IMG/VR virus record: IMGVR_UViG_3300023174_000038
Coordinates: 186,001-250,000 of that record
Strand: one strand, 5' to 3'
Length of the DNA: 64,000 bases
Shown: positions 80-14,286 of the stretch, in pieces
How positions within the stretch are numbered: the first letter of the stretch is position 1
How the letters are laid out: each line of letters opens with the position of its first letter
Notes under the pieces: generated by a model
Databases searched by the model: none
Seen by the model: only the letters and a program-made list of their open reading frames with translations
What the model was told of the DNA's origin: nothing
Made by a program: the position numbers and the translations under genes

Positions 80-511
80 ATGTTTGTTTTGTATTTTTTG
101 TTATGGACTCTAATGTTATATTGGATCCATAGAATAGGTCATTATCTACCTGTGATGCGTAATATACATATGCATCATCATAGATTTGTACTACAACATA
201 AGACCACGTGGCATTGGTCTAATCTATTCTTGTTTAATGATGACTGGACTAGTACTATAGATTTATGGCTTACTGAAGTTATACCTACATTACTTTTTAG
301 TCTAGTAACAGGACAATGGTGGATAAGTATATTTTATTATATATGGGCAGCGTTTATACAAGAAACAATAGAACACAATAAAAATTTTAACACCCCTATA
401 TTAACTAGTGGCAAATGGCATTTAATACATCACCGCTCTACTTTTAATTACGGGTTGTTTATACCCATATGGGATATAATATTTAGGACATACATACGTG
501 TACACAAGTGA
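80..511 (+). CDS. Fatty acid hydroxylase / sterol desaturase family protein
   Basis: His boxes YWIHRIGH, HMHHH, EH, HLIHH, NYG and hydrophobic segments. Confidence 0.8.
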   Translation: MFVLYFLLWTLMLYWIHRIGHYLPVMRNIHMHHHRFVLQHKTTWHWSNLFLFNDDWTSTIDLWLTEVIPTLLFSLVTGQWWISIFYYIWAAFIQETIEHNKNFNTPILTSGKWHLIHHRSTFNYGLFIPIWDIIFRTYIRVHK

Positions 512-1424
512 AAACAATTGGTATCAATGGCAATATGGTGATGAACCACTATTTGGTCGTCAAACAAGTAATTTGCCGTTTAACACATTCTACAGTAAAT
601 CAGATGTGCTGATTGGTTCCTTTAAGGAAGAATTACAGAAGGCAGCAAAAAGTACATTGGATCATTACCCCGGATTAAAACCTTGCATATTCTTTAGTGG
701 TGGGGTAGATAGTGAATTGATTCTACGTGCTTATTTAGATATAGGTGCTAATCCTGAAGTATATATTGTACGATATAAAAACGATTTAAACATTTATGAT
801 GTAAGCTATGCTATAACCATTTGTACGATATTAAAAGTTGAATATAATTTAATAGATTTTAATTTACAACAATTTTATGAAAATGATGCTGAAAAAATAG
901 CAGAGGATGCTCAGATAGATCGTCCTAGAATGTTGCCTCACATTAAATTTACTGAATGTGCAGATGGATTAATTATTGTAGGTCATAGCGATATCCGATG
1001 GTATAGACCACACGATGATTATACTAAAAAAGCTACGTGGTTAGCACAAGACTTTGAGCATGATATTGGTTGTGACAAATATAATATATTGCACAATCGT
1101 CCTGCAATCTATCAATGGTGGAAATGGACACCCGGTTTAGTAATATCTTATACTCAACTTAAATGGTTTAAACAATTAGTCAATGATGAAATAATAGGAA
1201 AATTGGGACTTAATTCTTCAAAACTATTAGGATTCAGAGAAGCATATCCCGACTTAATAACTAGAGAAAAACAAACTGGTTTTGAAAAGACTGATGAATT
1301 AATAAATGAATTTGAATCTTTCCTCAAACAAAAATATAAAGGTTTGCCTTATAGACAACTAGTAAATAGAACGTTAGATGACCTATTGACAGAGATAATT
1401 GGAATCCCGCATGATATTAAGTAA
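498..1424 (+). CDS. PP-loop (adenine nucleotide alpha hydrolase-like) protein
   Basis: FFSGGVDSE motif; paralog of 20304-21209. Confidence 0.7.
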   Translation: MYTSENNWYQWQYGDEPLFGRQTSNLPFNTFYSKSDVLIGSFKEELQKAAKSTLDHYPGLKPCIFFSGGVDSELILRAYLDIGANPEVYIVRYKNDLNIYDVSYAITICTILKVEYNLIDFNLQQFYENDAEKIAEDAQIDRPRMLPHIKFTECADGLIIVGHSDIRWYRPHDDYTKKATWLAQDFEHDIGCDKYNILHNRPAIYQWWKWTPGLVISYTQLKWFKQLVNDEIIGKLGLNSSKLLGFREAYPDLITREKQTGFEKTDELINEFESFLKQKYKGLPYRQLVNRTLDDLLTEIIGIPHDIK

Positions 1425-2589
1425 TAAAACTAATGGCTATTACATTGTCAATGGTGTCTCTACTGGTAACAAATTACAAGCAATACTTGAGGCTAGTAAA
1501 ACAAAATCAGAATTACGTTGGAATTTCTATGATGATATATTTTCTGCAGCCAGTAGTAAATTCAACAACAATCACATATTGCTTAAAGAATTATATAGAG
1601 CAAGAGCCCAGCAATTAAGAGATAGTAATGAATATCTAATTCTAAATTATAGTGGCGGTAGCGATAGTCATAATATACTAATGACTTTTTTAGAGTATAA
1701 TATAAAACTAGATCATATTTTTGTTCAATGGCCTGAACAATTAATGGACAAAGGTATATATACTCCTAATAGATTAGACAGAACTAACGCAAATTTTCAC
1801 AGTGAATGGGATTTAGTATTAAAGAAAGACTTAGTTTGGTTGAGTAGTAAGTATCCTGAAATTACTATTGAGATAGCAGATTGGACTACTACAGTAAAAG
1901 AGCAATTTTACAAAGATGATATATTTGCCAATGATGTTAGTAACCTGCCTAGCATTGCTAGGGCCCAAAAACAAAATACATTTAGTATAACAGAAGGTAC
2001 GCTAGCACTTCAGGGCAAAAAAGTGGCTAGTATATTTGGAGTTGATAAGCCGTGTGTAATTCATAAAGAAGGTAAATGGTTCTTTTACTTTGTTGATACT
2101 GCTTGTATGGCTCAACCAAATCCTGATAATCCATATGGTACTGAGTATTTTTATTGGTCTCCTAATTTTCCTGATATTGCAGTAGCACAGGCTCATATGA
2201 TGAAACGTTATTTTGAAATAAATAATACCAAAGCATACTTAGTACAGGCACCGTCTGAGCGTATAAAAGTAGACCCGTCATTTATTAATATCAGCTATGA
2301 ACATCATTACCTTGAATATGCACAAGTAGCAGAAATTGCAAAACTAGTTTGTTATCCATATTGGGACTTCAATCGCTTTCAAGCAGATAAACCTTTTGCA
2401 GTATTAGATGGATTTAAATTGGGAACAAGAGCGTGGGATAATGTTCTTACTAAAATACCTAATTTTAACCGTGTACAACAAGCATGGGAATATCATTGGA
2501 AAAGTTATTTAAAACAGATAGATATGAAGTTTATGAGAAATCAGGACACAGTTAATGTTTGTAAAACTAAATGGCATCATTTTGGATAA
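1411..2589 (+). CDS. PP-loop (adenine nucleotide alpha hydrolase-like) protein
   Basis: NYSGGSDSH motif; ATG at 1411 preferred over TTG at 1399. Confidence 0.7.
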   Translation: MILSNKTNGYYIVNGVSTGNKLQAILEASKTKSELRWNFYDDIFSAASSKFNNNHILLKELYRARAQQLRDSNEYLILNYSGGSDSHNILMTFLEYNIKLDHIFVQWPEQLMDKGIYTPNRLDRTNANFHSEWDLVLKKDLVWLSSKYPEITIEIADWTTTVKEQFYKDDIFANDVSNLPSIARAQKQNTFSITEGTLALQGKKVASIFGVDKPCVIHKEGKWFFYFVDTACMAQPNPDNPYGTEYFYWSPNFPDIAVAQAHMMKRYFEINNTKAYLVQAPSERIKVDPSFINISYEHHYLEYAQVAEIAKLVCYPYWDFNRFQADKPFAVLDGFKLGTRAWDNVLTKIPNFNRVQQAWEYHWKSYLKQIDMKFMRNQDTVNVCKTKWHHFG

Positions 2590-2623
2590 TTTCCCGCAAT
2601 CTTAGGCTAGGAATAAATATTTT

Positions 2624-2938
2624 ATGTATACAATTTTTAAAAAACAAATAAGGGAGTCATTAAACATCCCTTTTTATTTTGAGAAACATCTTACACCAAA
2701 TGAGTATAAGGTATATTTTCACACTAATTTTGTTGTAAATGAAAAATTTATTTCACATGAAGTAACTTATTCAGAAGATAAATTAATTATTATTGACAAA
2801 TTAGTTTGGTCATCACGTGATGCATTTTTAGATTATGCGTCAGATGCATTTTGTTATGACATATTAATGTTTCCGAATAAAATGTATAATATTAAAAATA
2901 AAATTGCAACAGTAATATCAGTAGAGGGGATATCATAA
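2624..2938 (+). CDS. Small hypothetical protein, paralog of 3562-3867
   Basis: Shared pattern (R..NI.PFY; SEDKL/SDDNL; W.S.D); TAAATA 4 nt upstream of ATG. Confidence 0.7.
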   Translation: MYTIFKKQIRESLNIPFYFEKHLTPNEYKVYFHTNFVVNEKFISHEVTYSEDKLIIIDKLVWSSRDAFLDYASDAFCYDILMFPNKMYNIKNKIATVISVEGIS

Positions 2939-3528
2939 TGACAATAGGGTTACCAATTTGGAAGACGTTTGAATCCAACGATTTTTTTAAAGATTTACAG
3001 ATCCCTAAAGATTGGGATACATTAGAAGATTTTGTTAATTGGTATATGGAATCTAAAATTCCTATTATGATTCCATGGAATGCTAAAGTTATACGTAGTG
3101 ATGATGCTGTGGCTATTTCTATTTTCAGAAAAGGCCAGTATCAAGTAGAATTTTATTTAGAATATCCTGAAATGTATATACGTAAACATTCACATCCTAG
3201 AATGGAAGTTATAACTATGGATTTGGGTGGAGGAGGATTAACACCTAGAAATGAAAATAATACGTCAAGGATATGGGGTACTGCTTATATGAAATTATTA
3301 GCAGGCGAGTATCATGGTGGTGACACTAGTAGTTTATTAAGTAATGGTTTTTGCACACTTGCATTTCAAAAATGGGAAGATCCTACTGAAATGACTTCTG
3401 CAGCCATTCAATGGAAAGGTGAAATCCAAGGGCCTATTCAAGCAAAACTTATTAAAGATAATGTTAAAACAGCATTAGTTCAGGATAATTATGCAGATGC
3501 TACTGGAATAGATAAAAACAATCAATAA
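2938..3528 (+). CDS. Cupin-like protein, paralog 1
   Basis: HSHPxME and later HG; shares SDDA..I..FRKG..QVE.YL and WKG...GPI with 5018-5587. Confidence 0.6.
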   Translation: MTIGLPIWKTFESNDFFKDLQIPKDWDTLEDFVNWYMESKIPIMIPWNAKVIRSDDAVAISIFRKGQYQVEFYLEYPEMYIRKHSHPRMEVITMDLGGGGLTPRNENNTSRIWGTAYMKLLAGEYHGGDTSSLLSNGFCTLAFQKWEDPTEMTSAAIQWKGEIQGPIQAKLIKDNVKTALVQDNYADATGIDKNNQ

Positions 3529-3561
3529 TTGGACTAAATATTATAACGGAGAAAAACAATC

Positions 3562-3867
3562 ATGTCATACAAAATAACAAGAACAGTAGTCAGACCTAAC
3601 ATCAGCACACCTTTTTATGAAGACCATGCTGATACCACCATTATAGCTTCTTATATTCAAACTACTTACCAGAATACTAATAAAATGATAGAAAAAACTA
3701 CTACAATTAGTGATGATAATTTAACATCTGTTACCGAAATTACCTGGGATTCATCTGATAGTTGGAATGAATTTCTTACTGATAACTATTTAATGACAAC
3801 ATATTTTATGCCTAGTAAAATTTATGAAGGTACACATGGTATGTTTTCTACATTTGTAGGTGCTTAA
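3562..3867 (+). CDS. Small hypothetical protein, paralog of 2624-2938
   Basis: ORF with GGAG SD and TAAATA upstream. Confidence 0.7.
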   Translation: MSYKITRTVVRPNISTPFYEDHADTTIIASYIQTTYQNTNKMIEKTTTISDDNLTSVTEITWDSSDSWNEFLTDNYLMTTYFMPSKIYEGTHGMFSTFVGA

Positions 3868-3876
3868 ATTTGATGT

Positions 3877-5016
3877 ATGACTCATTTTAATCCTCATTCA
3901 AATGATTGGTTAAAAAATAAATTTGATATATATAAAGAACTTAGAGCTAGAGATAAAGCATACTGGAGTGAAACCTATCAATTATATGTTATTACTAGAT
4001 ATGCCGATGTAAAATATGCGCTAAGTGAACATGATATCTTCTCATCTGCTAAGGGAAACTTAATAGTAGAAATGCCCTTTAGATTTGGCAGAACGTTAGG
4101 TGCTAGTGACAACCCATCACATGATGTATTTAAAAATATAGTAAAAAATGCGTATAGTAAGGATAATATAAATCGTATAGTAGATTTATTTTCTATTAAG
4201 GCAATAGAGTTACTTGAGAATAAACAATCGTTTAATGTTTCTACCGTTATAGAAGAACTAAGTGCTTGGGTAACTGCAGAAATATTAAACCTACCTTATG
4301 ATAAAGAACAGGTTAAAAATATCATTTTAGGTATACAGCGTCATAGTCCAGGATGTGTTTCAGTTAATGTAGATAGAACGTATTTAAATATATTTACTAA
4401 GTTACTTGATGACTTAACATCTAGAAAAGTAAAACCCACTGGTCCGGGTATATATAAAGAATTTATGACTAATCATCCAGATGTACAACCGGTAATGTCT
4501 TTGTTTCATGGACCAACTATATCCGGAGCTAGTTCACTTACCGGAGCATTAGAATTTTTAACATTAGATGTAGTTAGAGAAAATCAATTAGATATATTAT
4601 TAGAAGATAGGAATAATATTCCCAGCGTAATAGAAGAATCATTAAGATTTCATGCATCAACTGGTAGATTTTCTAGAACAGTAACTAAAGATGTAACACT
4701 ACATGGGATTGACCTTAAACCAGGTGATAGAGTTGCGTTATGTTTAGAATCTGCAAATAGAGACCCTGAAAAATTCATAGACCCTGAGAAATTCATTCTT
4801 AATAGAAGTACAGTTGGTCAATTAGCATTTGGTCATGGATTACATGCTTGTATAGCATTAGCTATTAGTAAATCAATAATGACTAAATATTTAGATATAT
4901 TATTAGATGTTGTTGGCAAATACAAAATAACAACATCTAATTCTGAATTAGAATATGTAATGACTGCATCCGGCAATGATGATATGATATCTAATATATG
5001 TATAGAAAAAATATAA
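3877..5016 (+). CDS. Cytochrome P450
   Basis: EESLR (ExxR), SANRDPEKF, heme motif FGHGLHACIA. Confidence 0.93.
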   Translation: MTHFNPHSNDWLKNKFDIYKELRARDKAYWSETYQLYVITRYADVKYALSEHDIFSSAKGNLIVEMPFRFGRTLGASDNPSHDVFKNIVKNAYSKDNINRIVDLFSIKAIELLENKQSFNVSTVIEELSAWVTAEILNLPYDKEQVKNIILGIQRHSPGCVSVNVDRTYLNIFTKLLDDLTSRKVKPTGPGIYKEFMTNHPDVQPVMSLFHGPTISGASSLTGALEFLTLDVVRENQLDILLEDRNNIPSVIEESLRFHASTGRFSRTVTKDVTLHGIDLKPGDRVALCLESANRDPEKFIDPEKFILNRSTVGQLAFGHGLHACIALAISKSIMTKYLDILLDVVGKYKITTSNSELEYVMTASGNDDMISNICIEKI

Positions 5017-5017
5017 T

Positions 5018-5587
5018 ATGACAACTAGATACAATGATAATCCTGACTATGTAAGAAAGGCATTCAATCAACTAGCAGATCCATTTGCTGATTTTGTTGT
5101 GCCTGAAACTTGGGACAACGTACAAGAATTTGCAGATTGGTGGATGGGAATACGTATGCCTATTGTTTTTCCTAAGTATCCGGAAGTATTTTTGTCAGAT
5201 GATGCTACTGCTATATGTTTATTCCGTAAAGGACGATTTCAAGTTGAGTTGTATTTAATACACCCAAAGCCCGGTGTTCCAACACATGAACATCCTGATG
5301 TTGAAGTGATTAAAATACGTACCGGGTTACCCGGAGGACCAGTAGCAAGTGATGTATTATATAATGGTCAAGCACACGGGTCTGGTATGAAATTAGAAGC
5401 AGAGATAAGAGGGTTCCCCTTACTTGCCATTCAGCATTGGCTTACTAGGGAGCCTACTACTATTGCATCAATGTGGAAAGGTCCTACTGCAGGACCTATA
5501 CATGAAGCACTTATACGCAGATACAATCCAGATGCGTATGTAATAGAAGGCTATGCAGATATTACACAAAAGATGAATAAGTCATAG
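5018..5587 (+). CDS. Cupin-like protein, paralog 2
   Basis: HEHPDVE and AHG motifs; similar to 2938-3528. Confidence 0.6.
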   Translation: MTTRYNDNPDYVRKAFNQLADPFADFVVPETWDNVQEFADWWMGIRMPIVFPKYPEVFLSDDATAICLFRKGRFQVELYLIHPKPGVPTHEHPDVEVIKIRTGLPGGPVASDVLYNGQAHGSGMKLEAEIRGFPLLAIQHWLTREPTTIASMWKGPTAGPIHEALIRRYNPDAYVIEGYADITQKMNKS

Positions 5588-6055
5588 TGACTTTAACATT
5601 TCTTCATGAATAGGACCTAGTGGCTCTCCACGATATTCTATAGTAGCACTTAATGGGTTTTTGATATCGGCAGGCCAACGTTGAATGTTATAAACTACTG
5701 CACCACGTGGTCCTATATCAAACCCATGTGTAATACTACTAGGACTAATTTTTCCTATAACACCCACATCTTCATCAGTAAGAACAATTGTCATAAGTGG
5801 TACAGGGTCGGGAAATTTAAGATAAGCAGTCATATCCCCACTTATAAAAATTACTTGATTCTCAAAAGGATGTGAATGCATTACTGTTGTTTTGTTTGGA
5901 AACAATAAGTAATATTCAATTACTACATTACCCTCAACCCATGCTAATGTACTAGCACTAGTGTCGGTATAGAAAACTCTATTATTTGGGATGTTAGGCA
6001 TATGGCAAAAACCACTGTCAACAAACGATTGTATTATCTCATCTGCGCTACGCAT
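5582..6055 (-). CDS. Cupin-like protein, paralog 3
   Basis: HSHPFEN, THG, EYRGEPLGPIHE matching paralogs 1 and 2. Confidence 0.6.
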   Translation of the reverse strand: MRSADEIIQSFVDSGFCHMPNIPNNRVFYTDTSASTLAWVEGNVVIEYYLLFPNKTTVMHSHPFENQVIFISGDMTAYLKFPDPVPLMTIVLTDEDVGVIGKISPSSITHGFDIGPRGAVVYNIQRWPADIKNPLSATIEYRGEPLGPIHEEMLKSL

Positions 6056-6759: not shown

Positions 6760-7374
6760 TTAGTTCCTTTTCTTATATAAATCTCTTTCATTATTGTAAC
6801 GATTGAATTTACGACCTTTAATCCAACCCTGGTCATAATAGTGAGGATAAAGCGCATATGGAATACATTGACTCTTGCTCAAATCAAAGTTTGAAACCCA
6901 GATAGTATTTCCTTTAGCATTTCCTTTCCTTTCTTTTGTCCAACTAAGGCGTTGTCCATGTGAACTGGCCGCTAGGTATTTTTCACGATAAACGGCATCA
7001 TTTAACATTCTATCTCGGTGCTTTAATCCTGCAATCTTAGCAGCCTTGGTTTGCTGTCCCGGTTGATGTCCTTGATTAGGTAATGTGTTTATATAAGAAA
7101 AGGAACCGTGGCCCCCTTCTACTATATTATAAGTAGTGTCTAAACTAACGAAATCCGCGTTTACGACCTGTTTTTCTCTAAATAACATTGATTCTTTGTC
7201 ATTGAAGTGTTCAATGATTTCTTTGACAAAATTCTCTTTACCATATTTTTTGATTGCACGATGAAGATTCAGACCGGATCCAAAGTACCCATCATTTAAG
7301 TCGGAAGTTTGATGAACACCTATATAGATTTTATTATTTAATGTATTGGTGATTTTGTATAGATAATAGAACAT
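6760..7374 (-). CDS. GIY-YIG homing endonuclease (Seg-like)
   Basis: YLYKITN...KIYIG, YFGSG, AIKKYGKENF, YNIVEGG. Confidence 0.88.
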   Translation of the reverse strand: MFYYLYKITNTLNNKIYIGVHQTSDLNDGYFGSGLNLHRAIKKYGKENFVKEIIEHFNDKESMLFREKQVVNADFVSLDTTYNIVEGGHGSFSYINTLPNQGHQPGQQTKAAKIAGLKHRDRMLNDAVYREKYLAASSHGQRLSWTKERKGNAKGNTIWVSNFDLSKSQCIPYALYPHYYDQGWIKGRKFNRYNNERDLYKKRN

Positions 7375-7428: not shown

Positions 7429-7529
7429 TGTCGTGTAGTGATACACGGCATTCTAAAACATACATCGTGGAAAATAAGGCCAAGAGGGCAACCCTGTTGA
7501 TTAGGGTGTACTATGTGTGTTTTAGAATG
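7429..7529 (+). ncRNA. Candidate structured ncRNA B (long closing stem)
   Basis: Hairpin TGTCGTGTA/TACACGGCA then 17-bp stem CATTCTAAAACATACAT/ATGTGTGTTTTAGAATG ending at the tRNA-Arg start. Confidence 0.55.
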
Positions 7530-7605
7530 CGACCGTAACTCAGTGGATTAGAGTACCTGTCTACGAAATAGGGAGTCGGAGGTTCAAGTCCTTCCGGTCG
7601 CACCA
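7529..7605 (+). tRNA. tRNA-Arg(ACG)
   Basis: Cloverleaf, anticodon arm CCTGT-CT ACG AA-ATAGG, encoded CCA. Confidence 0.95.
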
Positions 7606-7611
7606 ATATAT

Positions 7612-7687
7612 GGGACCATAGCTCAGTCGGTAGAGCAGTGGACTTTTAATCCATTGGTCGGGCGTTCGAACCGCCCTGGTCCCACCA
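7612..7687 (+). tRNA. tRNA-Lys(TTT)
   Basis: GTGGA-CT TTT AA-TCCAT, CCA. Confidence 0.95.
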
Positions 7688-7693
7688 TAATAT

Positions 7694-7783
7694 GGAAACG
7701 TGGCAGAGTTTGGTTTATTGCAACAGTCTTGAAAACTGTCGGTCCGAAAGGGCCCGTGAGTTCAAATCTCACCGTTTCTACCA
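7694..7783 (+). tRNA. tRNA-Ser(TGA)
   Basis: ACAGT-CT TGA AA-ACTGT, long variable arm, CCA. Confidence 0.95.
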
Positions 7784-7784
7784 T

Positions 7785-7861
7785 GGTGCTTGTCGTCAAG
7801 CGGTTAAGACCTCGGATTGTGATTCCGATATGCGTGGGTTCAAATCCCATCAAGCACCCCA
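7785..7861 (+). tRNA. tRNA-His(GTG)
   Basis: TCGGA-TT GTG AT-TCCGA, G-1:C73, CCA. Confidence 0.95.
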
Positions 7862-7862
7862 T

Positions 7863-7937
7863 GGATGTATAGCACAGCGGTAGTGCAATTCCTTCATACG
7901 GAATAGGTCAGTAGTTCAAATCTACTTACATCCACCA
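7863..7937 (+). tRNA. tRNA-Met(CAT), probably elongator
   Basis: ATTCC-TT CAT AC-GGAAT, CCA. Confidence 0.85.
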
Positions 7938-7942
7938 AACAT

Positions 7943-8016
7943 GCCCGGTTAGTTAAAAAGTATAACACACCCCTGATAAGGGTGAATCAGAGGAGCATTA
8001 CCTCTACTGGGTACCA
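7943..8016 (+). tRNA. tRNA-Ile(GAT), atypical D and T loops
   Basis: CACCC-CT GAT AA-GGGTG; acceptor GCCCGGT/ACTGGGT-A-CCA; T loop AGCATTA. Confidence 0.8.
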
Positions 8017-8023
8017 AATTTAC

Positions 8024-8097
8024 TGGGGGTTAGTTAAATGGTATAACATCGGATTTTGATTCCGAGATCACAAGTTCAATTCTTGTACCCTCTGCCA
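8024..8097 (+). tRNA. tRNA-Gln(TTG)
   Basis: TCGGA-TT TTG AT-TCCGA, CCA. Confidence 0.92.
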
Positions 8098-8179
8098 GTT
8101 ACGGAATATAATAAAGCCAAATTGATTGACAATCTGATATTAATCCTATTATAATGTTAAAAATTATATAGAAAGGTAT

Positions 8180-8503
8180 GTGATGGCAGGCAGATACATC
8201 GTTAGAAAATTTAAAAACGGAGTTAAGCATTTTTGGGATACTGATACAGGCAGTTGTATACACTGGTCTAAAGTCCAAGAGCGTATACCTAAAAAAGAAT
8301 TTGACAAATTATTTGAACAATTCAACAATAAACAACCAAAAAAAGAAAATGTTACTGAGCCACTTCCAAAACTATCTGAAATTTTGAGTGAAGTAATTAA
8401 CTTATATTCTGAAAAAATTTCAATAGAAGAAATAGTTGGAGCATTGGAGTTGTGCAAGACCCGTGCGTTAACAATGCATAAAATAAAAAAAATAAATCAA
8501 TGA
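8180..8503 (+). CDS. Hypothetical protein
   Basis: ORF after TTGACA-18-TATAAT (8126-8155) with AAGG SD. Confidence 0.65.
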   Translation: MMAGRYIVRKFKNGVKHFWDTDTGSCIHWSKVQERIPKKEFDKLFEQFNNKQPKKENVTEPLPKLSEILSEVINLYSEKISIEEIVGALELCKTRALTMHKIKKINQ

Positions 8504-8664
8504 GAGTGCCAGTTATGGGATAGACGATAGATTTGAGTCCCTGTCAATCTAGTCACAGTGGGGTTAACTGTGATGACACTATAGTATGATTTACGGGTGT
8601 ATAAACTTGCCTATACGAGACAATCTAACGAGGCTTACTAACAATAAGATAGTTAGGCTCCCTC
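8502..8664 (+). ncRNA. Candidate structured ncRNA C
   Basis: Hairpins TAGATT/AATCTA, TCACAGT/ACTGTGA, GTATA/TATAC, CTAAC/GTTAG; partial end pairing. Confidence 0.5.
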
Positions 8665-8671
8665 TTTTATC

Positions 8672-8746
8672 GGGTCCTTAGTTCAATGGATAGAATACGA
8701 TGCTTCGAACTTCGGGATGTGGGTTCAATTCCTGCAGGACCCGCCA
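8672..8746 (+). tRNA. tRNA-Arg(TCG)
   Basis: CGATG-CT TCG AA-CTTCG, acceptor GGGTCCT/AGGACCC-G-CCA. Confidence 0.88.
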
Positions 8747-8793
8747 TATGGCATTAAATACATATAGTGATAATAACAGAAAAGGAGTACTAC

Positions 8794-9354
8794 ATGGCTG
8801 TTCTAGCACTAGATATCTCGGGAGTTCCCCGGCAATGGATATCAAATGATGACGCAATTACCTATAAAGCAAAAGATGCCATAGCATGGTCAATGGGTAA
8901 TATTGTGGCTAAATATCGTGGTGGCATACAAAATGACGGTACATTAAGTTACTTAGAAGCTAATAGCATTATTGCTATCAAAGGTCATGGATTCAATCCA
9001 TACAAACACTCATGTGTTGCATTAACTAATAAAACATTGTTTGGTCGTGATAGACATGTATGTGCTTATTGCGGTGAACAGTTTCCAAACTATCATCTAT
9101 TAAGTCGTGACCACATTGTTCCACGTAGCAAAGGTGGTGAAAACACTTGGATGAATGTTGTTACCAGTTGTAAAACTTGTAACAGCAAAAAAGGACATAA
9201 GAGTTTAAAAGAAGTACGTATGGAATTACTATATGCACCTTATGTCCCAAACCACTACGAAAATATGATATTACAACATAGAACAATACTTGCTGACCAA
9301 ATGGAATATTTGTTAGCAGGTGTTCCAAAACATAGTAGAATATTATTAAGTTAG
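8794..9354 (+). CDS. HNH endonuclease family protein
   Basis: RDRHVCAYCG, SRDHIVPRSKGG, NVVTSCKTCNSKK; AAGGAG SD before ATG 8794. Confidence 0.9.
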   Translation: MAVLALDISGVPRQWISNDDAITYKAKDAIAWSMGNIVAKYRGGIQNDGTLSYLEANSIIAIKGHGFNPYKHSCVALTNKTLFGRDRHVCAYCGEQFPNYHLLSRDHIVPRSKGGENTWMNVVTSCKTCNSKKGHKSLKEVRMELLYAPYVPNHYENMILQHRTILADQMEYLLAGVPKHSRILLS

Positions 9355-9379
9355 TGTATAATACTATTAAATAAAATAC

Positions 9380-9454
9380 TCCCTTATAGCTCAGTGGTAG
9401 AGCAGCGCCCTTGTAAGGCGAAGGTCCCGTGTTCAAGTCATGGTGGGGGAACCA
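9380..9454 (+). tRNA. tRNA-Thr(TGT)
   Basis: CGCC-CT TGT AA-GGCG, CCA. Confidence 0.93.
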
Positions 9455-9461
9455 AATATAT

Positions 9462-9537
9462 TCTCTTGTAGCTCAGTCGGTAGAGCGTTTGACTGTTAAT
9501 CAAAATGTCCCTGGTTCGAGCCCAGGCAAGGGAGCCA
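9462..9537 (+). tRNA. tRNA-Asn(GTT)
   Basis: TTTGA-CT GTT AA-TCAAA, CCA. Confidence 0.95.
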
Positions 9538-9542
9538 AATTT

Positions 9543-10241
9543 ATGCATAAGATAAAAATATTCAGTCATATCATTGATACCCCAGATAGTTTAATGATTT
9601 TTAATAATCAATTCTCTTTACTTAAAGAAACTGGGTTACTAGACGTGGCATACAAAATATATCTATGCGTTAACGGAGAAGTATCTAAATTTGATACAAT
9701 ACAAGAATTAGCGAATCAATATCATAATGTAGAAATGATTCATACCAATACTAGTATTGAACATTATGAATATCCCACATTAAATTTTCTTAAAGAAAAT
9801 ATTGATAACGATACTGATTCTTATATTTTGTATTTTCATGTTAAAGGTGCTAGTAAAAACGAATCCAAAGATATACGTAATTGGCGTTTTCTATTAGAAT
9901 ACTATAATATCATAAAATATCAAACCTGTATAGATTATCTTAACAAGGGATATGATACAGTTGGTATACTATATAGAGAGGGTTTTCATAGTCAATGGCT
10001 ACACTATAGTGGAAACTTTTGGTGGGCTAATTCTAATCATATTAAGCGTTTACCTAAATTACCTCACCCATCTGATACATTAGGTGGCGGGAATAGTAAA
10101 ATTAGTATGTTGCCGTATATGAATGAAAACTTTAGATATGACCATGAAGCTTGGATAGGTTGTGTCAAACCCTGGAATTATATATCGTTGTTCCAAGATG
10201 ATATAGAAGAAGAAACACGTAGGATAATGAAATTATGTTAG
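9543..10241 (+). CDS. Hypothetical protein, possibly glycosyltransferase-like
   Basis: YEYPTL, LYFHVKG, HYSGNFWWA motifs; start moved past the tRNAs. Confidence 0.6.
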   Translation: MHKIKIFSHIIDTPDSLMIFNNQFSLLKETGLLDVAYKIYLCVNGEVSKFDTIQELANQYHNVEMIHTNTSIEHYEYPTLNFLKENIDNDTDSYILYFHVKGASKNESKDIRNWRFLLEYYNIIKYQTCIDYLNKGYDTVGILYREGFHSQWLHYSGNFWWANSNHIKRLPKLPHPSDTLGGGNSKISMLPYMNENFRYDHEAWIGCVKPWNYISLFQDDIEEETRRIMKLC

Positions 10242-10951
10242 TATCAGTAGACCCTTTTTATCATGTAACCATTGACAATTTTTTTGAGGAATCTTTAGCA
10301 GAAAAACTATCTAATGAATTTATTGATTATAATGATGAACGTTGGTTTTATTACAATAATGTTATTGAAAATAAAAAAACATTAAACGATTGGAGATTTT
10401 TACCCAAACATATATATCAAGCATTCACTCAGTTTTGCTCAGATGAATTTGTTAAAAAACTACAAGATATGACTGGTATAGAAAAATTGTATCCTGATTA
10501 TGGATTGCATGGTGGCGGCTGTCATATGCATGGTAGAAACGGTAAACTTAATATACATAGAGATTATTCTATACACCCTAAATTAGGATTAGAACGAAAG
10601 TTAAATCTTATTATATATCTATCTAAAGATTGGGATACGTCATGGGGAGGTGGATTAGAATTATGGTCACACGATGATGAAAACAATCAACCAAAAGAAA
10701 AAGTAAAAGAAGTAGAATGTGTTTTTAATCGTGCTGTACTTTTTGATACGACACAAGATTCTTGGCATGGTTTACCTGAACCCTTACGTTGTCCTGCAGG
10801 TGTCTATAGAAAAAGTTTAGCTATGTATTATATGACTAACCCTAGCCTAGAGGTTGACCCAAGACAACGGGCATTATTTGCACCCACAGAAAATCAGAAA
10901 AATGATATTGAAGTAAAAAACTTCATAGAAGAAAGAACAAAGCTTTCTTAA
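10235..10951 (+). CDS. 2OG-Fe(II) oxygenase
   Basis: HRD...LIIYL..WGGGLELW..FNRAVLF..SWHG..RKS. Confidence 0.88.
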   Translation: MLVSVDPFYHVTIDNFFEESLAEKLSNEFIDYNDERWFYYNNVIENKKTLNDWRFLPKHIYQAFTQFCSDEFVKKLQDMTGIEKLYPDYGLHGGGCHMHGRNGKLNIHRDYSIHPKLGLERKLNLIIYLSKDWDTSWGGGLELWSHDDENNQPKEKVKEVECVFNRAVLFDTTQDSWHGLPEPLRCPAGVYRKSLAMYYMTNPSLEVDPRQRALFAPTENQKNDIEVKNFIEERTKLS

Positions 10952-10954
10952 TAG

Positions 10955-11029
10955 CTGGCGTTAGTATAATGGATAATACAATCGGCTTCTACCCGATGAA
11001 TGTGGGTTCGATTCCTGCACGCCGGACCA
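10955..11029 (+). tRNA. tRNA-Arg(TCT)
   Basis: ATCGG-CT TCT AC-CCGAT, CCA. Confidence 0.92.
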
Positions 11030-11083
11030 AATAATATACGTATTTTATAGGTTAGAGATAAATACTCTAACCGAGGAGAGAGT

Positions 11084-11425
11084 ATGTGGAAATGTAAAAC
11101 ATGTGAAAAAGAAGGACAGGAACATTTTTATAAAAGCCAAGCTTGGTATTGTAAAAGTTGTTGGAATGTTCGTACGGCACACCGATCTAAAAACAATGTA
11201 AAAATTCTTAAAGAAGAATACGGTGGAAAATGCACCAAGTGTGGTTACAATAAATGCATGGATGCACTACAGTTTCACCATGTTGATCCTACTAAAAAGG
11301 AATTTTCATTAGGGTTAGCAAGACAAAAAAATTTAGATAAACTTAGAAAAGAGATGGACAAGTGTATTTTGGTTTGTAGTAATTGTCATATTGAAATTCA
11401 CCATGACATACATAAAAATAAATAA
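11084..11425 (+). CDS. HNH endonuclease with Zn-binding Cys pairs
   Basis: CxxC pairs, LQFHHVDP, CILVCSNCH. Confidence 0.85.
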   Translation: MWKCKTCEKEGQEHFYKSQAWYCKSCWNVRTAHRSKNNVKILKEEYGGKCTKCGYNKCMDALQFHHVDPTKKEFSLGLARQKNLDKLRKEMDKCILVCSNCHIEIHHDIHKNK

Positions 11426-11427
11426 AA

Positions 11428-11456
11428 TAGAGGTTCGATTCCTCTACGCCGGACCA
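11428..11456 (+). repeat. Duplicated 3' end (T arm and acceptor strand) of tRNA-Arg(TCT)
   Basis: AGAGGTTCGATTCCTCTACGCCGGACCA vs GTGGGTTCGATTCCTGCACGCCGGACCA at 11002-11029. Confidence 0.9.
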
Positions 11457-12035
11457 TTATTGAATTAGAAGTTGCCAATCTTCATTGCTATAGTGATAAT
11501 CTTCCAACACTTCTAGCATTCTTGCAAAGACAATTAATCCTCTTTTGTGATTAATTAATTCTATTTGATGTAATTTTATCTTCTTTTCAGCAAAAGTTTT
11601 TAATAAATTCTCACCCTCTTTTTTCAACTTAATTTTTTTTGAAACAATATTCAATTTGGCTATTAGATTGTTACATTCTACGATGGCAACAGAGGTTTGT
11701 TGTTGTAATGCACGTATTTCTATTTTCATTTTTAGTATTAAGTCATCAAATTCTGGGTTAATGTGTGGTAGAAATTGTGTTATCATAACAGACAGTCTAC
11801 CAAAGACTTCAGTATTAAGATTGAAGTCATCATAGTGATCACCTGTTGAATCATAGTGTTCACGTTTAGTTGGATCACTTAACACTTCATATGCTAATTT
11901 CATTCGCTTAAACTTTTCTACATCTCCTCCCTTGTCAGGATGATATAATTGTGCCAAGATTCTGTATTTTTGTTTGATTTCTTCAGACGTACAGGTTTTT
12001 GGTAATTCTAAATCATCGTATAGGGAGGTTGTCAT
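11457..12035 (-). CDS. DnaJ-domain protein
   Basis: LYDDLEL...YHPDKGG...AYEVLSDPTKREHYD. Confidence 0.88.
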   Translation of the reverse strand: MTTSLYDDLELPKTCTSEEIKQKYRILAQLYHPDKGGDVEKFKRMKLAYEVLSDPTKREHYDSTGDHYDDFNLNTEVFGRLSVMITQFLPHINPEFDDLILKMKIEIRALQQQTSVAIVECNNLIAKLNIVSKKIKLKKEGENLLKTFAEKKIKLHQIELINHKRGLIVFARMLEVLEDYHYSNEDWQLLIQ

Positions 12036-12088
12036 AACAATATTTATCATGAAATATTGCATGTAGTATTAAGTACTATGTTTAAAAT

Positions 12089-12198
12089 TTGACAATAAAT
12101 CCTCAATCTGCTATACTCTAGTTATAGATTGATTGAACAAGTTTTTGGGAAACAGTGAAACAAAAGAATTTGACAATAAATGGTAGTTATGATACAAT
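12089..12198 (+). promoter_or_regulatory. Two tandem sigma70-type promoters
   Basis: TTGACAATAAAT...TATACT and TTGACAATAAAT...TACAAT, 17-nt spacers. Confidence 0.75.
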
Positions 12199-12286
12199 CA
12201 TAGCATGAGTTGAGAAAGTCATCGTACTAATCAACAAGGTTCTTTAAAATTCTGAGTTATCATATAGCCCTGTTTAAGTTACAGGG

Positions 12287-12501
12287 ACTATATGAAAATA
12301 CATTAAGGTCACCTAATCCGTTAGGCAGGTCTATGGGGTCAGCCGGTGGACGACGCCGGGTCGCATAGGGTGCAAGAAGCGTATCGACAATAGCAATATT
12401 GTTTAACGTGACGGGCAGTTAGGCAGTAATGACAGAAACAACGATCCAGTAGACGGTACTGGTGGATACAGTTTACGTTCCTTAATGTGTTTTCATATAG
12501 T
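12287..12501 (+). ncRNA. Candidate structured ncRNA D (22-bp closing stem)
   Basis: ACTATATGAAAATACATTAAGG/CCTTAATGTGTTTTCATATAGT enclosing a GC-rich multibranch core. Confidence 0.65.
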
Positions 12502-12502
12502 G

Positions 12503-12629
12503 TGTTATTAGTTTTGCTGACGTAAGCGCCTGAGTAAACGTCAACTCTAACTAACTATGTATAGAAACGGTAAACTTGCAAATAATTCCGTTGAGCATAG
12601 CAAATAGTGCGTCAGCAAAACTAATAACA
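12503..12629 (+). ncRNA. Candidate structured ncRNA E (22-bp closing stem)
   Basis: TGTTATTAGTTTTGCTGACGTA/TGCGTCAGCAAAACTAATAACA, ends 1 nt before tRNA-Glu. Confidence 0.65.
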
Positions 12630-12630
12630 T

Positions 12631-12705
12631 GGAGCATTCGTCTATCGGTTAGGACATTAGGTTTTCATCCTAAGAAGAGGAGTTCGATTCTCCTATGCTC
12701 TTCCA
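12631..12705 (+). tRNA. tRNA-Glu(TTC)
   Basis: TTAGG-TT TTC AT-CCTAA, CCA. Confidence 0.93.
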
Positions 12706-12708
12706 AAG

Positions 12709-12905
12709 AATCCCGTTACTACTTTCGTTAAAGTAGCGTTTGAATAGCGATAGAGTTCCGGTGGCAGAAAACCGTTAGCGTGAGGATTAAAAATACCCTC
12801 GCAGGCTCTGATAGGCAGAATCTCAACTGCACACAGACTTTGAATAAATGGAGATGGACAGAGTAACTGCTCAATTAAGGGCTTGTGTGGAAACAAGTAG
12901 CTTAT
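12709..12905 (+). ncRNA. Candidate structured ncRNA F
   Basis: Hairpins CTACTTT/AAAGTAG, CGGT/ACCG, GCGTGAGG/CCTCGC, GAG-TAACTG-CTC, CTTGT/ACAAG. Confidence 0.5.
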
Positions 12906-12915
12906 ACTAATTTTT

Positions 12916-12978
12916 TGAGTTACATCGCCTTGATACTTCTCTCAGTAATGAGACACTAGGTCTTGCAACCGTAACTCA
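12916..12978 (+). ncRNA. Small tRNA-sized structured element G
   Basis: TGAGTTAC/GTAACTCA closing stem; inner TCTCA-GTAA-TGAGA. Confidence 0.4.
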
Positions 12979-12982
12979 TCTT

Positions 12983-13068
12983 GGAGATGTAGGAAAATTG
13001 GTAACCCCAGGAGACTGTAAATCTTCCGCCTTATGGCACTACTGGTTCAACTCCAGTCGTCTCCACCA
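12983..13068 (+). tRNA. tRNA-Tyr(GTA)
   Basis: GGAGA-CT GTA AA-TCTTC, variable arm, CCA. Confidence 0.93.
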
Positions 13069-13135
13069 AGAATATAGGAGGGTCGCTGGGCAGGCGTACT
13101 CTTAAACGACCTAGGCCAAAGGGGTGTCCTATTCT
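13069..13135 (+). ncRNA. Small structured element H
   Basis: ATAGGA/TCCTAT outer stem, GGGTCG/CGACCT inner stem. Confidence 0.4.
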
Positions 13136-13141
13136 GTGTTA

Positions 13142-13216
13142 GGTCTCAAAGTGTTCACGGACGCATACATGCCTGTCACGCATGAGGAGCGGGATCGTTA
13201 CCCGCTGGGACCGCCA
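13142..13216 (+). tRNA. tRNA-Asp(GTC), atypical T loop
   Basis: CATGC-CT GTC AC-GCATG; T loop ATCGTTA; GCCA end. Confidence 0.88.
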
Positions 13217-13262
13217 AAATATTTGACAACAATCATTGTATGATATATAGATAACAAGTTTT

Positions 13263-13347
13263 GCGAGTGTGGTGGAATCGGAATACACACAAGACTTAAA
13301 ATCTTGCGCCGCAAGGATTGAGGGTTCAAGTCCCTCCACTCGCACCA
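13263..13347 (+). tRNA. tRNA-Leu(TAA)
   Basis: CAAGA-CT TAA AA-TCTTG, variable arm, CCA. Confidence 0.95.
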
Positions 13348-13356
13348 AAGAATGAT

Positions 13357-13433
13357 GCCTCTATAGCGCAATTGGTTAGCGCAGCGGACTCATAATCCGT
13401 TGGTTCCTGGTTCGAGTCCAGGTGGAGGCACCA
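13357..13433 (+). tRNA. tRNA(CAT), probably Ile2 (lysidine type)
   Basis: GCGGA-CT CAT AA-TCCGT; context resembles proteobacterial tRNA-Ile2. Confidence 0.8.
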
Positions 13434-13441
13434 GTTAAGCA

Positions 13442-13533
13442 GGAGACGTGGCCGAGTGGCCGAAGGCAGCAGGTTGCTAACCTGTCGTATGTAGTAATAT
13501 GTACCGTGAGTTCGAATCTCACCGTCTCCACCA
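13442..13533 (+). tRNA. tRNA-Ser(GCT)
   Basis: GCAGG-TT GCT AA-CCTGT, long variable arm, CCA. Confidence 0.95.
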
Positions 13534-13534
13534 A

Positions 13535-13717
13535 TTAGCGATGGTTTGTTTTGTTTATGATTTGATGTAAGATGTTAGGATCATCACTCATCATCCTAGC
13601 TAGTAAACCAGTAAGATAACCCCGTTCATATAATAATTGTTCGTGGCTATCTTTGTAATTACGTTTGTTTTGACGCAACAACTTTTCAACAACATCAATA
13701 CAGTTTTGTAGTTCCAT
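13535..13717 (-). CDS. Small hypothetical protein (MELQNC...)
   Basis: TAAATA 4 nt upstream of ATG 13717. Confidence 0.6.
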   Translation of the reverse strand: MELQNCIDVVEKLLRQNKRNYKDSHEQLLYERGYLTGLLARMMSDDPNILHQIINKTNHR

Positions 13718-13732
13718 ACTGTATTTATAAAA

Positions 13733-13930
13733 GAACGTTCCGGGTGTCTCCGGATAGTGTGACCCACACGATGAGAAGTAGTGTGACAACTACGGGTGGT
13801 AGTCTTTAAACCGAAAGGCCGCTAGCAATGCGAGAACGGTCCCTGTCGGGAAGCGGGTGGAAGGAGTGTGTGATGGGTATGATAGCGTCATATCTTGATA
13901 CTCTATAATTACCGCCGGGGGATGCAGAGC
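13733..13930 (+). ncRNA. Candidate structured ncRNA I
   Basis: GC-rich; hairpins TCCGG/CCGGA, GTGTG/CACAC, GTAGT/ACTAC, TATGA/TCATA; TCCCT/GGGGA. Confidence 0.55.
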
Positions 13931-13936
13931 ATATAT

Positions 13937-14014
13937 GCAACGGTGGCAGAGTGGTCCAATGCAACGGATTGCAAATCCGTAAAACCGTCAGTTCAAATCT
14001 GACCCGTTGCTCCA
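13937..14014 (+). tRNA. tRNA-Cys(GCA)
   Basis: ACGGA-TT GCA AA-TCCGT, U73-CCA. Confidence 0.93.
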
Positions 14015-14019
14015 AACAA

Positions 14020-14184: not shown

Positions 14185-14196
14185 AAATATATTTAT

Positions 14197-14270
14197 GCGG
14201 GGTTCGTATAGTGGTAATACCTCAGCCTTCCAAGCTGATGCGGAGAGTTCGATTCTCTTACCCCGCTCCA
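14197..14270 (+). tRNA. tRNA-Gly(TCC)
   Basis: TCAGC-CT TCC AA-GCTGA, U73-CCA. Confidence 0.95.
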
Positions 14271-14286
14271 TTATTATAAATATCAT

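Follow-up and report, generated by a model that had tools for sequence, protein, structure and literature searches.

Why would a bacteriophage carry a cytochrome P450, and how could such an enzyme activate oxygen when its I-helix lacks the usual acidic residue and no ferredoxin is encoded nearby? This question arises from a 64,000-nt stretch of DNA (hereafter the window; positions 186,001 to 250,000 of IMG/VR virus record IMGVR_UViG_3300023174_000038), in which an ORF at 3877..5016 (+) encodes a 379-aa protein. A preliminary description, made from the sequence alone, had noted intact ExxR and Cys-heme motifs, the sequence ISGASSL where A/G-G-x-D/E-T is expected, and the absence of a ferredoxin from the window. 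It gave as established that P450s are rare in phages and inferred atypical chemistry or the use of host redox partners. The observation was confirmed, with one correction concerning the Cys pocket. The interpretation is partly supported, because the motif turned out to mark a whole family rather than this gene alone, and because neither the chemistry nor the electron source has been shown.

A P450 gene in a complete phage genome

The ORF starts with ATG, no alternative genetic code was used, the motif coordinates were checked by translation, and the product matches the Pfam p450 profile (PF00067) with E 8.5e-15 and 54.9 bits against a cut-off of 22.8. In searches of PDB, 392 P450 chains were matched at E<=1e-3, the best being P450-T2 (8fbc) with E 1.4e-40, or 2.9e-58 when a family profile was used. 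The AF2 model has a pLDDT of 90.5 and a pTM of 0.91, all top 500 Foldseek PDB hits are P450s, and the TM score to 8fbc is 0.86. The P450 fold is thus well supported, whereas a 450-nm CO complex of a thiolate-ligated haem was not measured. The K-helix ExxR motif (ESLR, E254-S-L-R257) lies at 4636..4647 (+), and R295 (nt 4759-4761) is taken as the third Arg of the ERR triad. E254, R257 and R295 are invariant in the family, as are C325, H323, R285 and H82, which are also counted among the residues for haem and fold.

The genome is that of a phage. It is a complete jumbo myovirus genome of 348,701 bp from lake water (CheckV 100%), with a Gp23 capsid protein (E 5e-99) and a T4-type terminase. The capsid is closest to jumbo myoviruses of Proteobacteria. 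A cyanophage origin was considered but rejected, as only a 69-nt tRNA-Asn matched Synechococcus phages and the genome has no psbA. The absence of a ferredoxin holds for the window and extends to the whole 349-kb genome: profile searches found no Fer2, Fer4_15, Flavodoxin_1 or Pyr_redox_2, and no ORF contains an Fe-S or rubredoxin motif. A class I three-component system encoded together is therefore not present. The gene is under purifying selection, with an omega (dN/dS) of 0.11 against the 92%-identical copy in L001, one of the related loci. Being embedded among phage genes, recurrent in independent viral genomes and under purifying selection, it qualifies as a phage auxiliary metabolic gene. 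No RNA run holds the locus, so that expression is untested, and no haem-binding or activity data exist. PHROGs has no family for the P450 or its neighbours.

Active-site signature and extent of the family

The I-helix motif ISGASSL (aa 215-221) is encoded at 4519..4539 (+). A family profile aligned to the 8fbc structure places S216-G217-A218-S219-S220 on A235-G236-V237-E238-S239, so that Ser (S219) replaces the acid of the acid-alcohol pair and the alcohol residue is also Ser (S220). G217 and S220 are invariant in the family. The conserved (A/G)Gx(D/E)(T/S) pair, a feature common in but not obligatory for the superfamily, is thus lacking. The acid position is never Asp or Glu in the family (0/120, 0/36 and 0/9 in three separate comparisons), whereas 93 of 121 neighbouring non-family P450 representatives have Asp or Glu there. 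The deviation is more than chance, but about a quarter of ordinary bacterial neighbours (about 23%) also lack the acid, and the trait is therefore unusual but not unprecedented.

The Cys-ligand loop FGHGLHACIA is encoded at 4828..4857 (+), with the ligand C325 at 4849-4851. Here the preliminary description missed a deviation: the last Gly of the motif, two residues after the Cys ligand, is Ala (A327). This residue is Ala in most of the family but Gly in 120 of the 121 nearest non-family representatives. F318, G321, H323 and C325 of the FxxGx(H/R)xCxG loop are present (G319, H323 and C325 being invariant, and F318 and G321 nearly so), and with the final Gly replaced the comparison does not settle whether the loop conforms to this pattern. 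The B-C region at 4081..4134 (+) (R69 ... TLGASDNPSHD ... K86) is shared with CYP203A-like P450s, as seen in the alignment to 8fbc. R69 and H82 are invariant and K86 nearly so. By analogy, the H82/K86 pair would bind haem propionates. R69 aligns with R73 of P450-T2, a site screened in the directed evolution of that enzyme, for which sites were chosen around the haem pocket and on loops (PMC11334723). These functional roles are inferred.

The altered I-helix marks a discrete family of at least 360 clusters at 90% identity, all from metagenomes, with 33 IMG/VR contigs. Because the claim of a separate, phage-only family rests on the absence of closer relatives, 1.84 billion representatives were searched. 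Only 19 reached E<=1e-30, with identities of 40-57%, followed by a gap to the next P450s at 32% or less. Close identity to a common bacterial CYP with the same motif, which had been named in advance as an outcome that would overturn the reading, was looked for here and not found: the nearest other P450s (representatives P0137-P0140 and P0142-P0144) are CYP203A-like and carry AGxES. Assignment to a CYP family, likewise proposed beforehand, did not place the protein in CYP203, for which the nomenclature convention requires more than 40% amino acid identity to a named member. Identity is 24-25% over the structural alignment to 8fbc, 32-40% by hand count in the two best-conserved blocks only, and 28-32% to CYP203-like library representatives.

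Two pattern scans of 185,579 prokaryote species, based on three conserved peptide patterns, found no member of the family. The contexts examined are phage-like, and three of five carry phage hallmark genes within the fetched flanks. Relatives sit next to terminase and tail sheath genes, next to RNR and RNase H, and next to GP38, holin and endolysin. The restriction to phages nevertheless rests on pattern-limited genome scans and on a sample of contexts. The contig of the divergent member P0126, which carries TctA, is not clearly viral, and the nearest outsider, P0137, sits on a 1.4-kb contig without context. The statement that P450s are rare in phages is true of cultured phages. There was no relative among 50,697 GenBank phage records, BFVD holds one phage P450 against about 18 from giant viruses, and the literature names only Mycobacterium phage Adler (PMC9405906, PMC11814380), while literature searches for a description of a phage P450 family found none. 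It is not true of metagenomes, given the size of the present family.

Gene neighbourhood of the P450

In this phage the P450 lies in a 13-kb virus-specific oxygenase island. Its upstream part contains a 143-aa fatty-acid-hydroxylase-type membrane di-iron oxygenase at 80..511 (+) (PF04116, E 9.3e-12), which is syntenic in the related loci L025 and L034, and a 308-aa protein of unknown function at 498..1424 (+), which is syntenic with the cassette in related phages. The gene at 1399..2589 (+) codes for a 396-aa PP-loop (SGGxDS) ATP-pyrophosphatase-like protein of a phage-restricted family, in which S85-G86-G87 and D89-S90 are invariant. Its assignment by sequence failed, and only structure comparison (model pLDDT 76; VIA Z 8-9 to GMP synthetase, TilS, PAPS reductase, NAD synthetase, AsnB and LarE) together with the SGGxDS motif places it. 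The nearest Atlas clusters are 100% viral.

Three cupin-like paralogues occur close to the P450. The first, a cupin-like metalloprotein of 196 aa, lies at 2938..3528 (+). Its residues H84, H86 and H126 are invariant, whereas the Glu/Asp/Asn position after HxH is variable, and it shows weak profile hits to Cupin_2 (TM1459, E 0.03) and plant cysteine oxidase, with Atlas leads to PCO_ADO and Cupin_2. The second (189 aa) at 5018..5587 (+) starts 1 nt after the P450 stop codon, and the third (157 aa) at 5582..6055 (-) is convergent with the second. A 101-aa protein of a phage-restricted family is encoded at 3562..3867 (+), 9 nt upstream of the P450, and has a 104-aa paralogue at 2624..2938 (+). The 101-aa protein contains no Cys and cannot be an Fe-S carrier; with 0-1 Cys, the ~105-aa proteins in general are not Fe-S carriers. 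An EthD/ABM-like role for them is unsupported, as there was no Pfam or PDB support and only a weak Atlas lead to DUF6974. Gaps between genes in the window are 1-35 nt, and no terminator-like site was found on the + strand between 221 and 7600, although promoter and terminator scans did not exceed shuffled controls in a useful way. Complex prediction was not carried out, as no protein-protein binding is claimed.

Possible functions and relation to known P450s

The explanation favored here, with moderate confidence, is that the phage carries a folded, soluble P450, which very probably binds haem, as a stand-alone auxiliary oxygenase. The gene travels alone between unrelated phage architectures: jumbo-phage oxygenase islands; T4-like phages, where it lies between tail fibres and terminase; phages with RNR, an RNase H-type exonuclease and an unannotated putative ThyX; and phages with a GP38 adhesin and a holin. 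Three changes separate the family from its nearest non-family relatives, which are CYP203A-like at about 30% identity: a small neutral residue in place of the I-helix acid, Ser as the alcohol residue, and Ala two residues after the Cys ligand. Since the phage encodes no ferredoxin, flavodoxin or reductase, the enzyme most likely takes electrons from the ferredoxin or flavodoxin system of the host and activates O2, with Ser220 plus ordered water or the substrate standing in for the missing acid. Loss of the I-helix acid slows proton delivery in model P450s, so ordinary monooxygenation is not assured, but retention of Ser at the alcohol position, as in the closest solved relative, argues against radically different chemistry. 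Of the two possibilities raised in the preliminary description, host partners are the likelier, but neither is shown. By analogy with CYP203A, and given the invariant pocket Arg residues, the substrate is probably a small polar or anionic, perhaps aromatic, metabolite. This inference leans on a relative at only about 25-30% overall identity whose natural substrate is itself unknown, and the neighboring genes differ between phage types, so that context gives no pathway. The analysis itself demonstrates the identity of the protein as a P450, its location in a phage, the boundary of the family, the motif pattern, purifying selection and the absence of partner genes, whereas haem binding, the electron source, the chemistry and the substrate class are deduced.

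Alternatively, although this is only a tentative possibility, the P450 of jumbo phages might be one step of a multi-enzyme phage pathway that includes the PP-loop ATP-pyrophosphatase, the cupin metalloenzymes, the ~105-aa proteins, and the fatty-acid desaturase and hydroxylase genes. Candidate roles are remodelling of host lipids or processing of an imported organic acid. Consistently, the order PP-loop, cupin, small protein, P450, cupin is conserved and tightly packed in 13 loci, and an FA_hydroxylase and two FA_desaturase genes lie directly upstream. Genes for the TctC transporter binding protein occur in the cassette of relatives, and TctA lies beside a divergent member. However, the P450 occurs without any of these partners in the T4-like, RNR-type and GP38-type phages, triads of PP-loop, cupin and small protein also occur away from the P450 in the loci L011 and L025, and TctC is absent from the genome studied here. 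None of the partner families has an assigned reaction.

Somewhat less likely is a partner-independent or non-monooxygenase reaction. Because the I-helix acid is lost and the Cys pocket is altered, the enzyme would work without a ferredoxin and could use peroxide or catalyse a coupling, isomerisation or dehydration, which would suit a virus that brings no electron carrier. The absence of the acid in every family member, the near uniqueness of the Cys+2 change (1 of 121 neighbours) and the lack of a redox partner in a complete genome would be in line with this. An AhpC/AhpD-like pair 5 kb upstream in the same island hints at peroxide traffic, and the best NCBIfam hit is the cyclodipeptide-coupling P450 subfamily (TIGR04538), albeit at 111.7 bits against a cut-off of 500. 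On the other hand, aa 216-220 contain no Arg-Pro pair or other acid/base residue of the kind that defines CYP152 peroxygenases, the Ser at the alcohol position is invariant as in the partner-dependent P450-T2 (PMC7780096), and about 23% of ordinary neighbouring P450s also lack the acid. A more far-reaching combination of these ideas is not excluded but appears unlikely: a P450 family native to bacteriophages and without cellular counterpart, whose re-engineered oxygen-activation site would support chemistry that needs no dedicated redox partner, or a reaction type not yet described for P450s, and which in jumbo phages would work inside a virus-specific oxygenase island (PP-loop adenylating enzyme, Fe-cupins, di-iron desaturases and hydroxylase) that rewires host lipid or organic-acid metabolism during infection.

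A decaying or non-catalytic relic, for example a haem-binding or haem-sequestering protein that no longer turns over substrate, is very unlikely. The loss of the acid and the altered Cys pocket could reflect relaxed catalytic constraint, but dN/dS is low, 35 columns are invariant down to 39% identity, including pocket-region residues such as G60-N61-L62, R69, F265 and R267 and not only haem ligands, and the ORF is intact, at about 380 aa, in the full-length clusters listed. Mis-assembled or mis-binned bacterial DNA, or a recent host pick-up of no viral significance, could be suspected because phage P450s are almost unknown in isolates and that of phage Adler was host-derived (PMC9405906, PMC11814380), but is highly unlikely, as identical contigs from an independent study bridge both junctions of the gene, the same synteny occurs at 64-92% identity in other contigs of 156-345 kb, phage hallmark genes lie directly beside relatives, the GC content matches the genome, and no cellular relative exceeds 32% identity in the representative search and the pattern scans of prokaryote species.

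P450s were thought to be nearly absent from bacteriophages, with one host-derived case in a mycobacteriophage, and the debate on viral P450s has centred on giant viruses. Here a whole P450 family appears to live in phages. It recurs in lake metagenomes from many studies, has moved between unrelated phage types, and has its own active-site signature and no partner genes. It adds a new CYP family to the catalogue, marks the oxygenase island for study, and offers a concrete, expressible target for the questions of what a phage gains from a P450, how a P450 works with only host electron carriers, and what loss of the I-helix acid together with the Cys+2 Gly-to-Ala change does to O2 activation.

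Among known systems, the CYP152 peroxygenases and the CYP121/CYP134 cyclodipeptide enzymes also depart from (A/G)Gx(D/E)T and do chemistry other than classic partner-driven hydroxylation. CYP134A1 (3nc3) is among the better PDB hits, but the score of the phage protein lies far below the TIGR04538 cut-off, no cyclodipeptide synthase was noted in the flanks examined, and the alcohol Ser is kept. CYP152 enzymes carry Arg-Pro in place of the acid-alcohol pair and bind a fatty-acid carboxylate, whereas the phage motif SGASS has no Arg, and no CYP152 chain appears among the listed PDB hits. The closest match in sequence and structure is the CYP203A subfamily (P450-T2; CYP203A1 of Rhodopseudomonas palustris). 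Both are short soluble class-I-type P450s, share the B-C region motif GNL...R.G.TLG.SD.P.HD, and have Ser rather than Thr as the I-helix alcohol. CYP203A enzymes bind phenolics and hydroxybenzoates and accept ferredoxin systems (PMC7780096). However, overall identity is only about 25-32%, and CYP203A-like proteins have AG[VILF]ES with the acid and C-x-G after the ligand, in contrast to SGxSS and C-I-A in this family. P450-T2 comes from a hot-spring metagenome and CYP203A1 from a bacterium (PMC7780096), while this family has been seen only in phage contexts. CYP102L1 of Mycobacterium phage Adler and the giant-virus P450s (Lamb et al., 2019, as cited in PMC9405906 and PMC11814380) likewise are virus-encoded without virus-encoded redox partners, and the use of host partners has been proposed for them as well. 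The gene of Adler is a single recent acquisition from its host (PMC11814380), and the giant-virus P450s are eukaryote-type and structurally distant (TM 0.45-0.72), whereas the present family is diverse (39-92% identity), spread over several phage lineages, and without an identifiable cellular donor.

The P450 gene and its active-site motifs

The window contains an ATG-started ORF of 379 aa at positions 3877-5016 (+ strand), whose product is assigned to the p450 family in Pfam with 54.9 bits against a cut-off of 22.8 (all translations were made with genetic code table 11). A phmmer search of the PDB retrieved 392 distinct P450 sequences, the best being 8fbc_A with an E-value of 1.4e-40. An AlphaFold2 model, which was built on a 31-sequence alignment of the family, has a pLDDT of 90.5 and a pTM of 0.91 and contains a continuous I-helix at residues 207-234. 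Foldseek comparison of this model returned only P450s, with 8fbc as the top hit at a TM score of 0.86. Translation of the exact coordinates confirmed three motifs: ISGASSL at aa 215-221 (nt 4519-4539), E254-S-L-R257 (nt 4636-4647), and FGHGLHACIA (nt 4828-4857) with the ligand C325 at nt 4849-4851. The preliminary description of a phage P450 with an intact ExxR motif, a Cys-heme motif, and a non-standard I-helix was correct in what it observed, except that the Cys-heme motif is not fully canonical.

An alignment of a family profile with 8fbc places S216-G217-A218-S219-S220-L221 on A235-G236-V237-E238-S239-L240. The glycine is kept and the alcohol residue is Ser, as in the closest solved relative, but the conserved acid is replaced by Ser and so is the leading Ala. 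A second deviation, not recognized in the preliminary description, is that the Gly two residues after the Cys ligand is Ala (C-I-A). These positions were compared between the family and its 121 nearest non-family representatives of 330-470 aa. The I-helix acid is Asp or Glu in 93 of the 121 neighbours but in none of the family sequences in three sets (0/120, 0/36, and 0/9). The I-helix alcohol is Thr or Ser in 113 of the 121 neighbours and always Ser in the family where aligned. The residue at Cys+2 is Gly in 120 of the 121 neighbours, but Ala in 7 of the 9 family representatives and in most sequences of the sets of 120 and 36. The motif is therefore real and non-random, although about a quarter of the ordinary neighbours also lack the acid, so that this trait alone is unusual rather than unique.

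Phage nature of the genome and extent of the family

The window represents bases 186,001-250,000 of a single IMG/VR virus record of 348,701 bp, which CheckV rates 100% complete. This genome encodes a T4-type major capsid protein (Gp23, E-value 5e-99) and a T4-type large terminase. The capsid protein is 64-67% identical to those of jumbo myoviruses of Vibrio, Pseudomonas (PA5oct), Sinorhizobium, and E. coli, but the host of this phage is not known. The window itself holds 25 tRNA genes, homing endonucleases, and a DNA ligase. The tRNA genes form an array (7529-16935) that covers nearly all amino acids, includes three tRNA-Met, and is interspersed with an HNH endonuclease (8767-9354), a GIY-YIG homing endonuclease (6760-7374, reverse strand), a 2OG-Fe(II) oxygenase (10235-10951), a DnaJ-domain protein (11457-12062, reverse strand), and a methyltransferase (16091-16627). 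The tRNA-Asn is 95.7% identical to that of Synechococcus phage S-RIM8, but the genome has no psbA and nothing marks it as a cyanophage. An ORF of 1130 aa (31033-34425, reverse strand) has no PHROG match, and the ORFs at 58660-60207, 60424-61518, and 17586-18806 (all reverse strand) are likewise unannotated, whereas 61544-62878 is an ATP-dependent DNA ligase and 53518-55464 matches phrog_22485. The cassette sequence occurs in lake and freshwater metagenomes from 13 studies. Contigs from an independent study are identical and bridge both junctions of the P450 gene (3638-3988, and 4955 onward), which rules out a chimeric assembly.

A word search found at least 360 clusters of relatives at 90% identity. 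The best 120 of these are 56-92% identical, 344-435 aa long (mostly about 380 aa), and all metagenomic, and several sit on contigs of 345-360 kb, the size of this genome. Because the existence of a separate family rests on the absence of closer relatives, an exhaustive search of 1.84 billion representatives was performed. Only 19 reach an E-value of 1e-30 or lower. Full-length representatives fall at 40-57% identity (249-456 bits), followed by a gap to 32% or less (140 bits or less). Of the eight representatives just beyond this gap that were aligned, seven have AG[VILF]ES plus C-x-G (one has AGFAS), like CYP203A. Close identity to a common bacterial CYP with the same motif, which had been put forward beforehand as an outcome that would speak against the observation, was thus looked for and not found among these representatives.

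In IMG/VR, 33 loci with relatives were found. One type comprises jumbo-phage cassettes like that of the window (type A). In T4-like phages (type B) the gene order is tail fibres, P450, small terminase, large terminase, and tail sheath. Phages of a third type (type C) carry RNR, a probable thymidylate synthase ThyX (recognized by eye only), a glutaredoxin-like ORF, a T4 RNase H-type exonuclease, and phrog_11903. A 40%-identical member follows a GP38 tail-fibre adhesin and precedes holin and endolysin genes, a 42% member lies among tiny early-gene-like ORFs, and a 44% member lies beside TctA on a short contig (P0126) of unclear origin. In the T4-like and GP38-type phages (loci L017, 4101-6828, and L039, 869-5985), the P450 sits directly after tail-fibre or adhesin genes and before the packaging or lysis genes, which is an odd late-region position for a metabolic gene. 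The P450 copy in another locus (L033, 7893-9071) lacks part of the Cys-ligand loop in the alignment, where residues before H-A-C are missing, and sits on a long branch; it may be a damaged or mis-assembled copy.

Two pattern scans with three near-invariant peptides, covering one genome from each of 185,579 prokaryote species, found no member of the family. The restriction to phages rests on these pattern-limited scans and on the contexts sampled. A tblastn search of 50,697 GenBank phage records found no member either, and BFVD holds a single phage P450, from an uncultured Caudovirales phage, against about 18 from giant viruses. In a maximum-likelihood tree, for which the root is unknown, the type B and C genes form a supported clade (100/99) nested among type A sequences, which suggests transfer between phage lineages. 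The dN/dS ratio between the window gene and its 92%-identical relative is 0.11.

Redox partners and neighbouring genes

The lack of a ferredoxin, which the preliminary description had stated for the window, extends to the complete genome, where no match to Fer2, Fer4_15, Flavodoxin_1, or Pyr_redox_2 was found although the control genomes did give matches in the same searches. A motif scan of all 1,430 ORFs found no credible ferredoxin, rubredoxin, Rieske, or cytochrome b5 signature. The flanks of relatives listed by Pfam also show none, and the small proteins next to the P450 have 0-1 Cys and cannot carry Fe-S clusters.

The P450 lies in a same-strand block of roughly 13 kb. Just upstream of the window (genome positions C1:179484-186079, locus L045) lies a redox and oxygenase island that encodes, in order, a NifU_N Fe-S scaffold, an AhpC/TSA peroxiredoxin and a CMD (AhpD-like) protein, a GNAT, a B12-binding radical SAM enzyme (reverse strand), and two fatty-acid desaturases (FA_desaturase). 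A motif scan suggests about five radical-SAM-like ORFs in the genome in all. The island leads into the FA_hydroxylase (80-511), which is followed by an unknown protein of 308 aa (498-1424), a 396-aa protein with an invariant SGGxDS motif (1399-2589), a 104-aa protein (2624-2938), a 196-aa cupin (2938-3528), a 101-aa protein (3562-3867), the P450, a 189-aa cupin (5018-5587), and a 157-aa cupin (5582-6055, reverse strand). The SGGxDS protein was modelled at a pLDDT of 76 and resembles PP-loop ATP-pyrophosphatases at Z 8-9, namely GMP synthetase, TilS, PAPS reductase, NAD synthetase, AsnB, and LarE. The cupins keep invariant His residues at positions 84, 86, and 126 and give weak hits to Cupin_2 and to thiol-dioxygenase-type cupins. 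According to the Atlas, the nearest clusters of the PP-loop and small-protein families are entirely viral, and those of the cupins are mostly viral.

The order PP-loop, cupin, small protein, P450 recurs in 13 loci. Paralogous sets of these three virus-restricted families, the PP-loop ATP-pyrophosphatase-like proteins of ~395 aa, His-rich cupins of ~190 aa (sometimes ~310-540 aa), and proteins of ~105 aa, are repeated in the window (1399-6055) and in the loci L003, L009-L012, L011, and L025. They often occur with TctC-type solute-binding proteins, and no reaction is known for any of them. However, the P450 also occurs without these genes and the triads occur without the P450. We therefore treat the cassette as a co-located module and not as an obligatory set of partners. 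Components of a tripartite tricarboxylate transporter are also phage-encoded (TctC in L003:11752-12729 and L025:11164-12048 and 14961-15827; TctA beside the divergent P450 on the P0126 contig), which suggests that the phages modify host uptake of organic acids. TctC is absent from the window genome.

Inferred mechanism and comparison with known P450s

What the analysis itself demonstrates is an intact, conserved, and selected P450 in a phage, with no partner genes and a family-specific active-site signature; the following considerations on its mechanism are inferences from general P450 knowledge. H82 and K86 (C-helix), R285, and H323 are the usual haem-propionate ligands. All of them are invariant except K86, which is nearly so, and haem binding is thus expected, although no data on haem binding, expression, or activity exist. 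Loss of the acid means that proton delivery to the ferric-peroxo species must use Ser220 with water or with the substrate. The closest characterized relatives are the CYP203A enzymes. P450-T2, which is 73% identical to CYP203A1, accepts several ferredoxin systems and binds L-mimosine and emodin, and CYP203A1 binds 4-hydroxybenzoate and chlorophenols (PMC7780096). R69 aligns with R73 of P450-T2, one of the sites screened in the directed evolution of that enzyme, which were chosen around the haem pocket and on loops (PMC11334723). R69 and R267 are invariant and R264 is nearly so.

Our best reading is a stand-alone auxiliary oxygenase that is reduced by host ferredoxin or flavodoxin and acts on a small polar, possibly aromatic-acid, compound. 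The substrate class is an analogy drawn at about 25-30% identity. The TctC and TctA organic-acid transporter genes near relatives would fit an anionic substrate, but the lack of TctC in this genome must be considered. Partner-independent chemistry is a serious rival, although we consider it unlikely, and the enzyme lacks the defining residues of known peroxygenases. The earlier proposal of atypical chemistry or use of host redox partners remains an inference; host partners are the likelier of the two, but neither is shown.

Mycobacterium phage Adler is the only P450-bearing phage named in the searchable literature, and its gene was acquired from the host (PMC9405906, PMC11814380). No description of the present family was found in that literature, which excludes subscription-only papers. 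The protein is not a member of CYP203 (identity below 40%), of CYP152, or of the cyclodipeptide-associated subfamily, for which it scores 111.7 against a cut-off of 500. It is a member of the P450 superfamily, within which we regard it as representing a new, apparently phage-restricted CYP family with a fixed altered oxygen-activation site.
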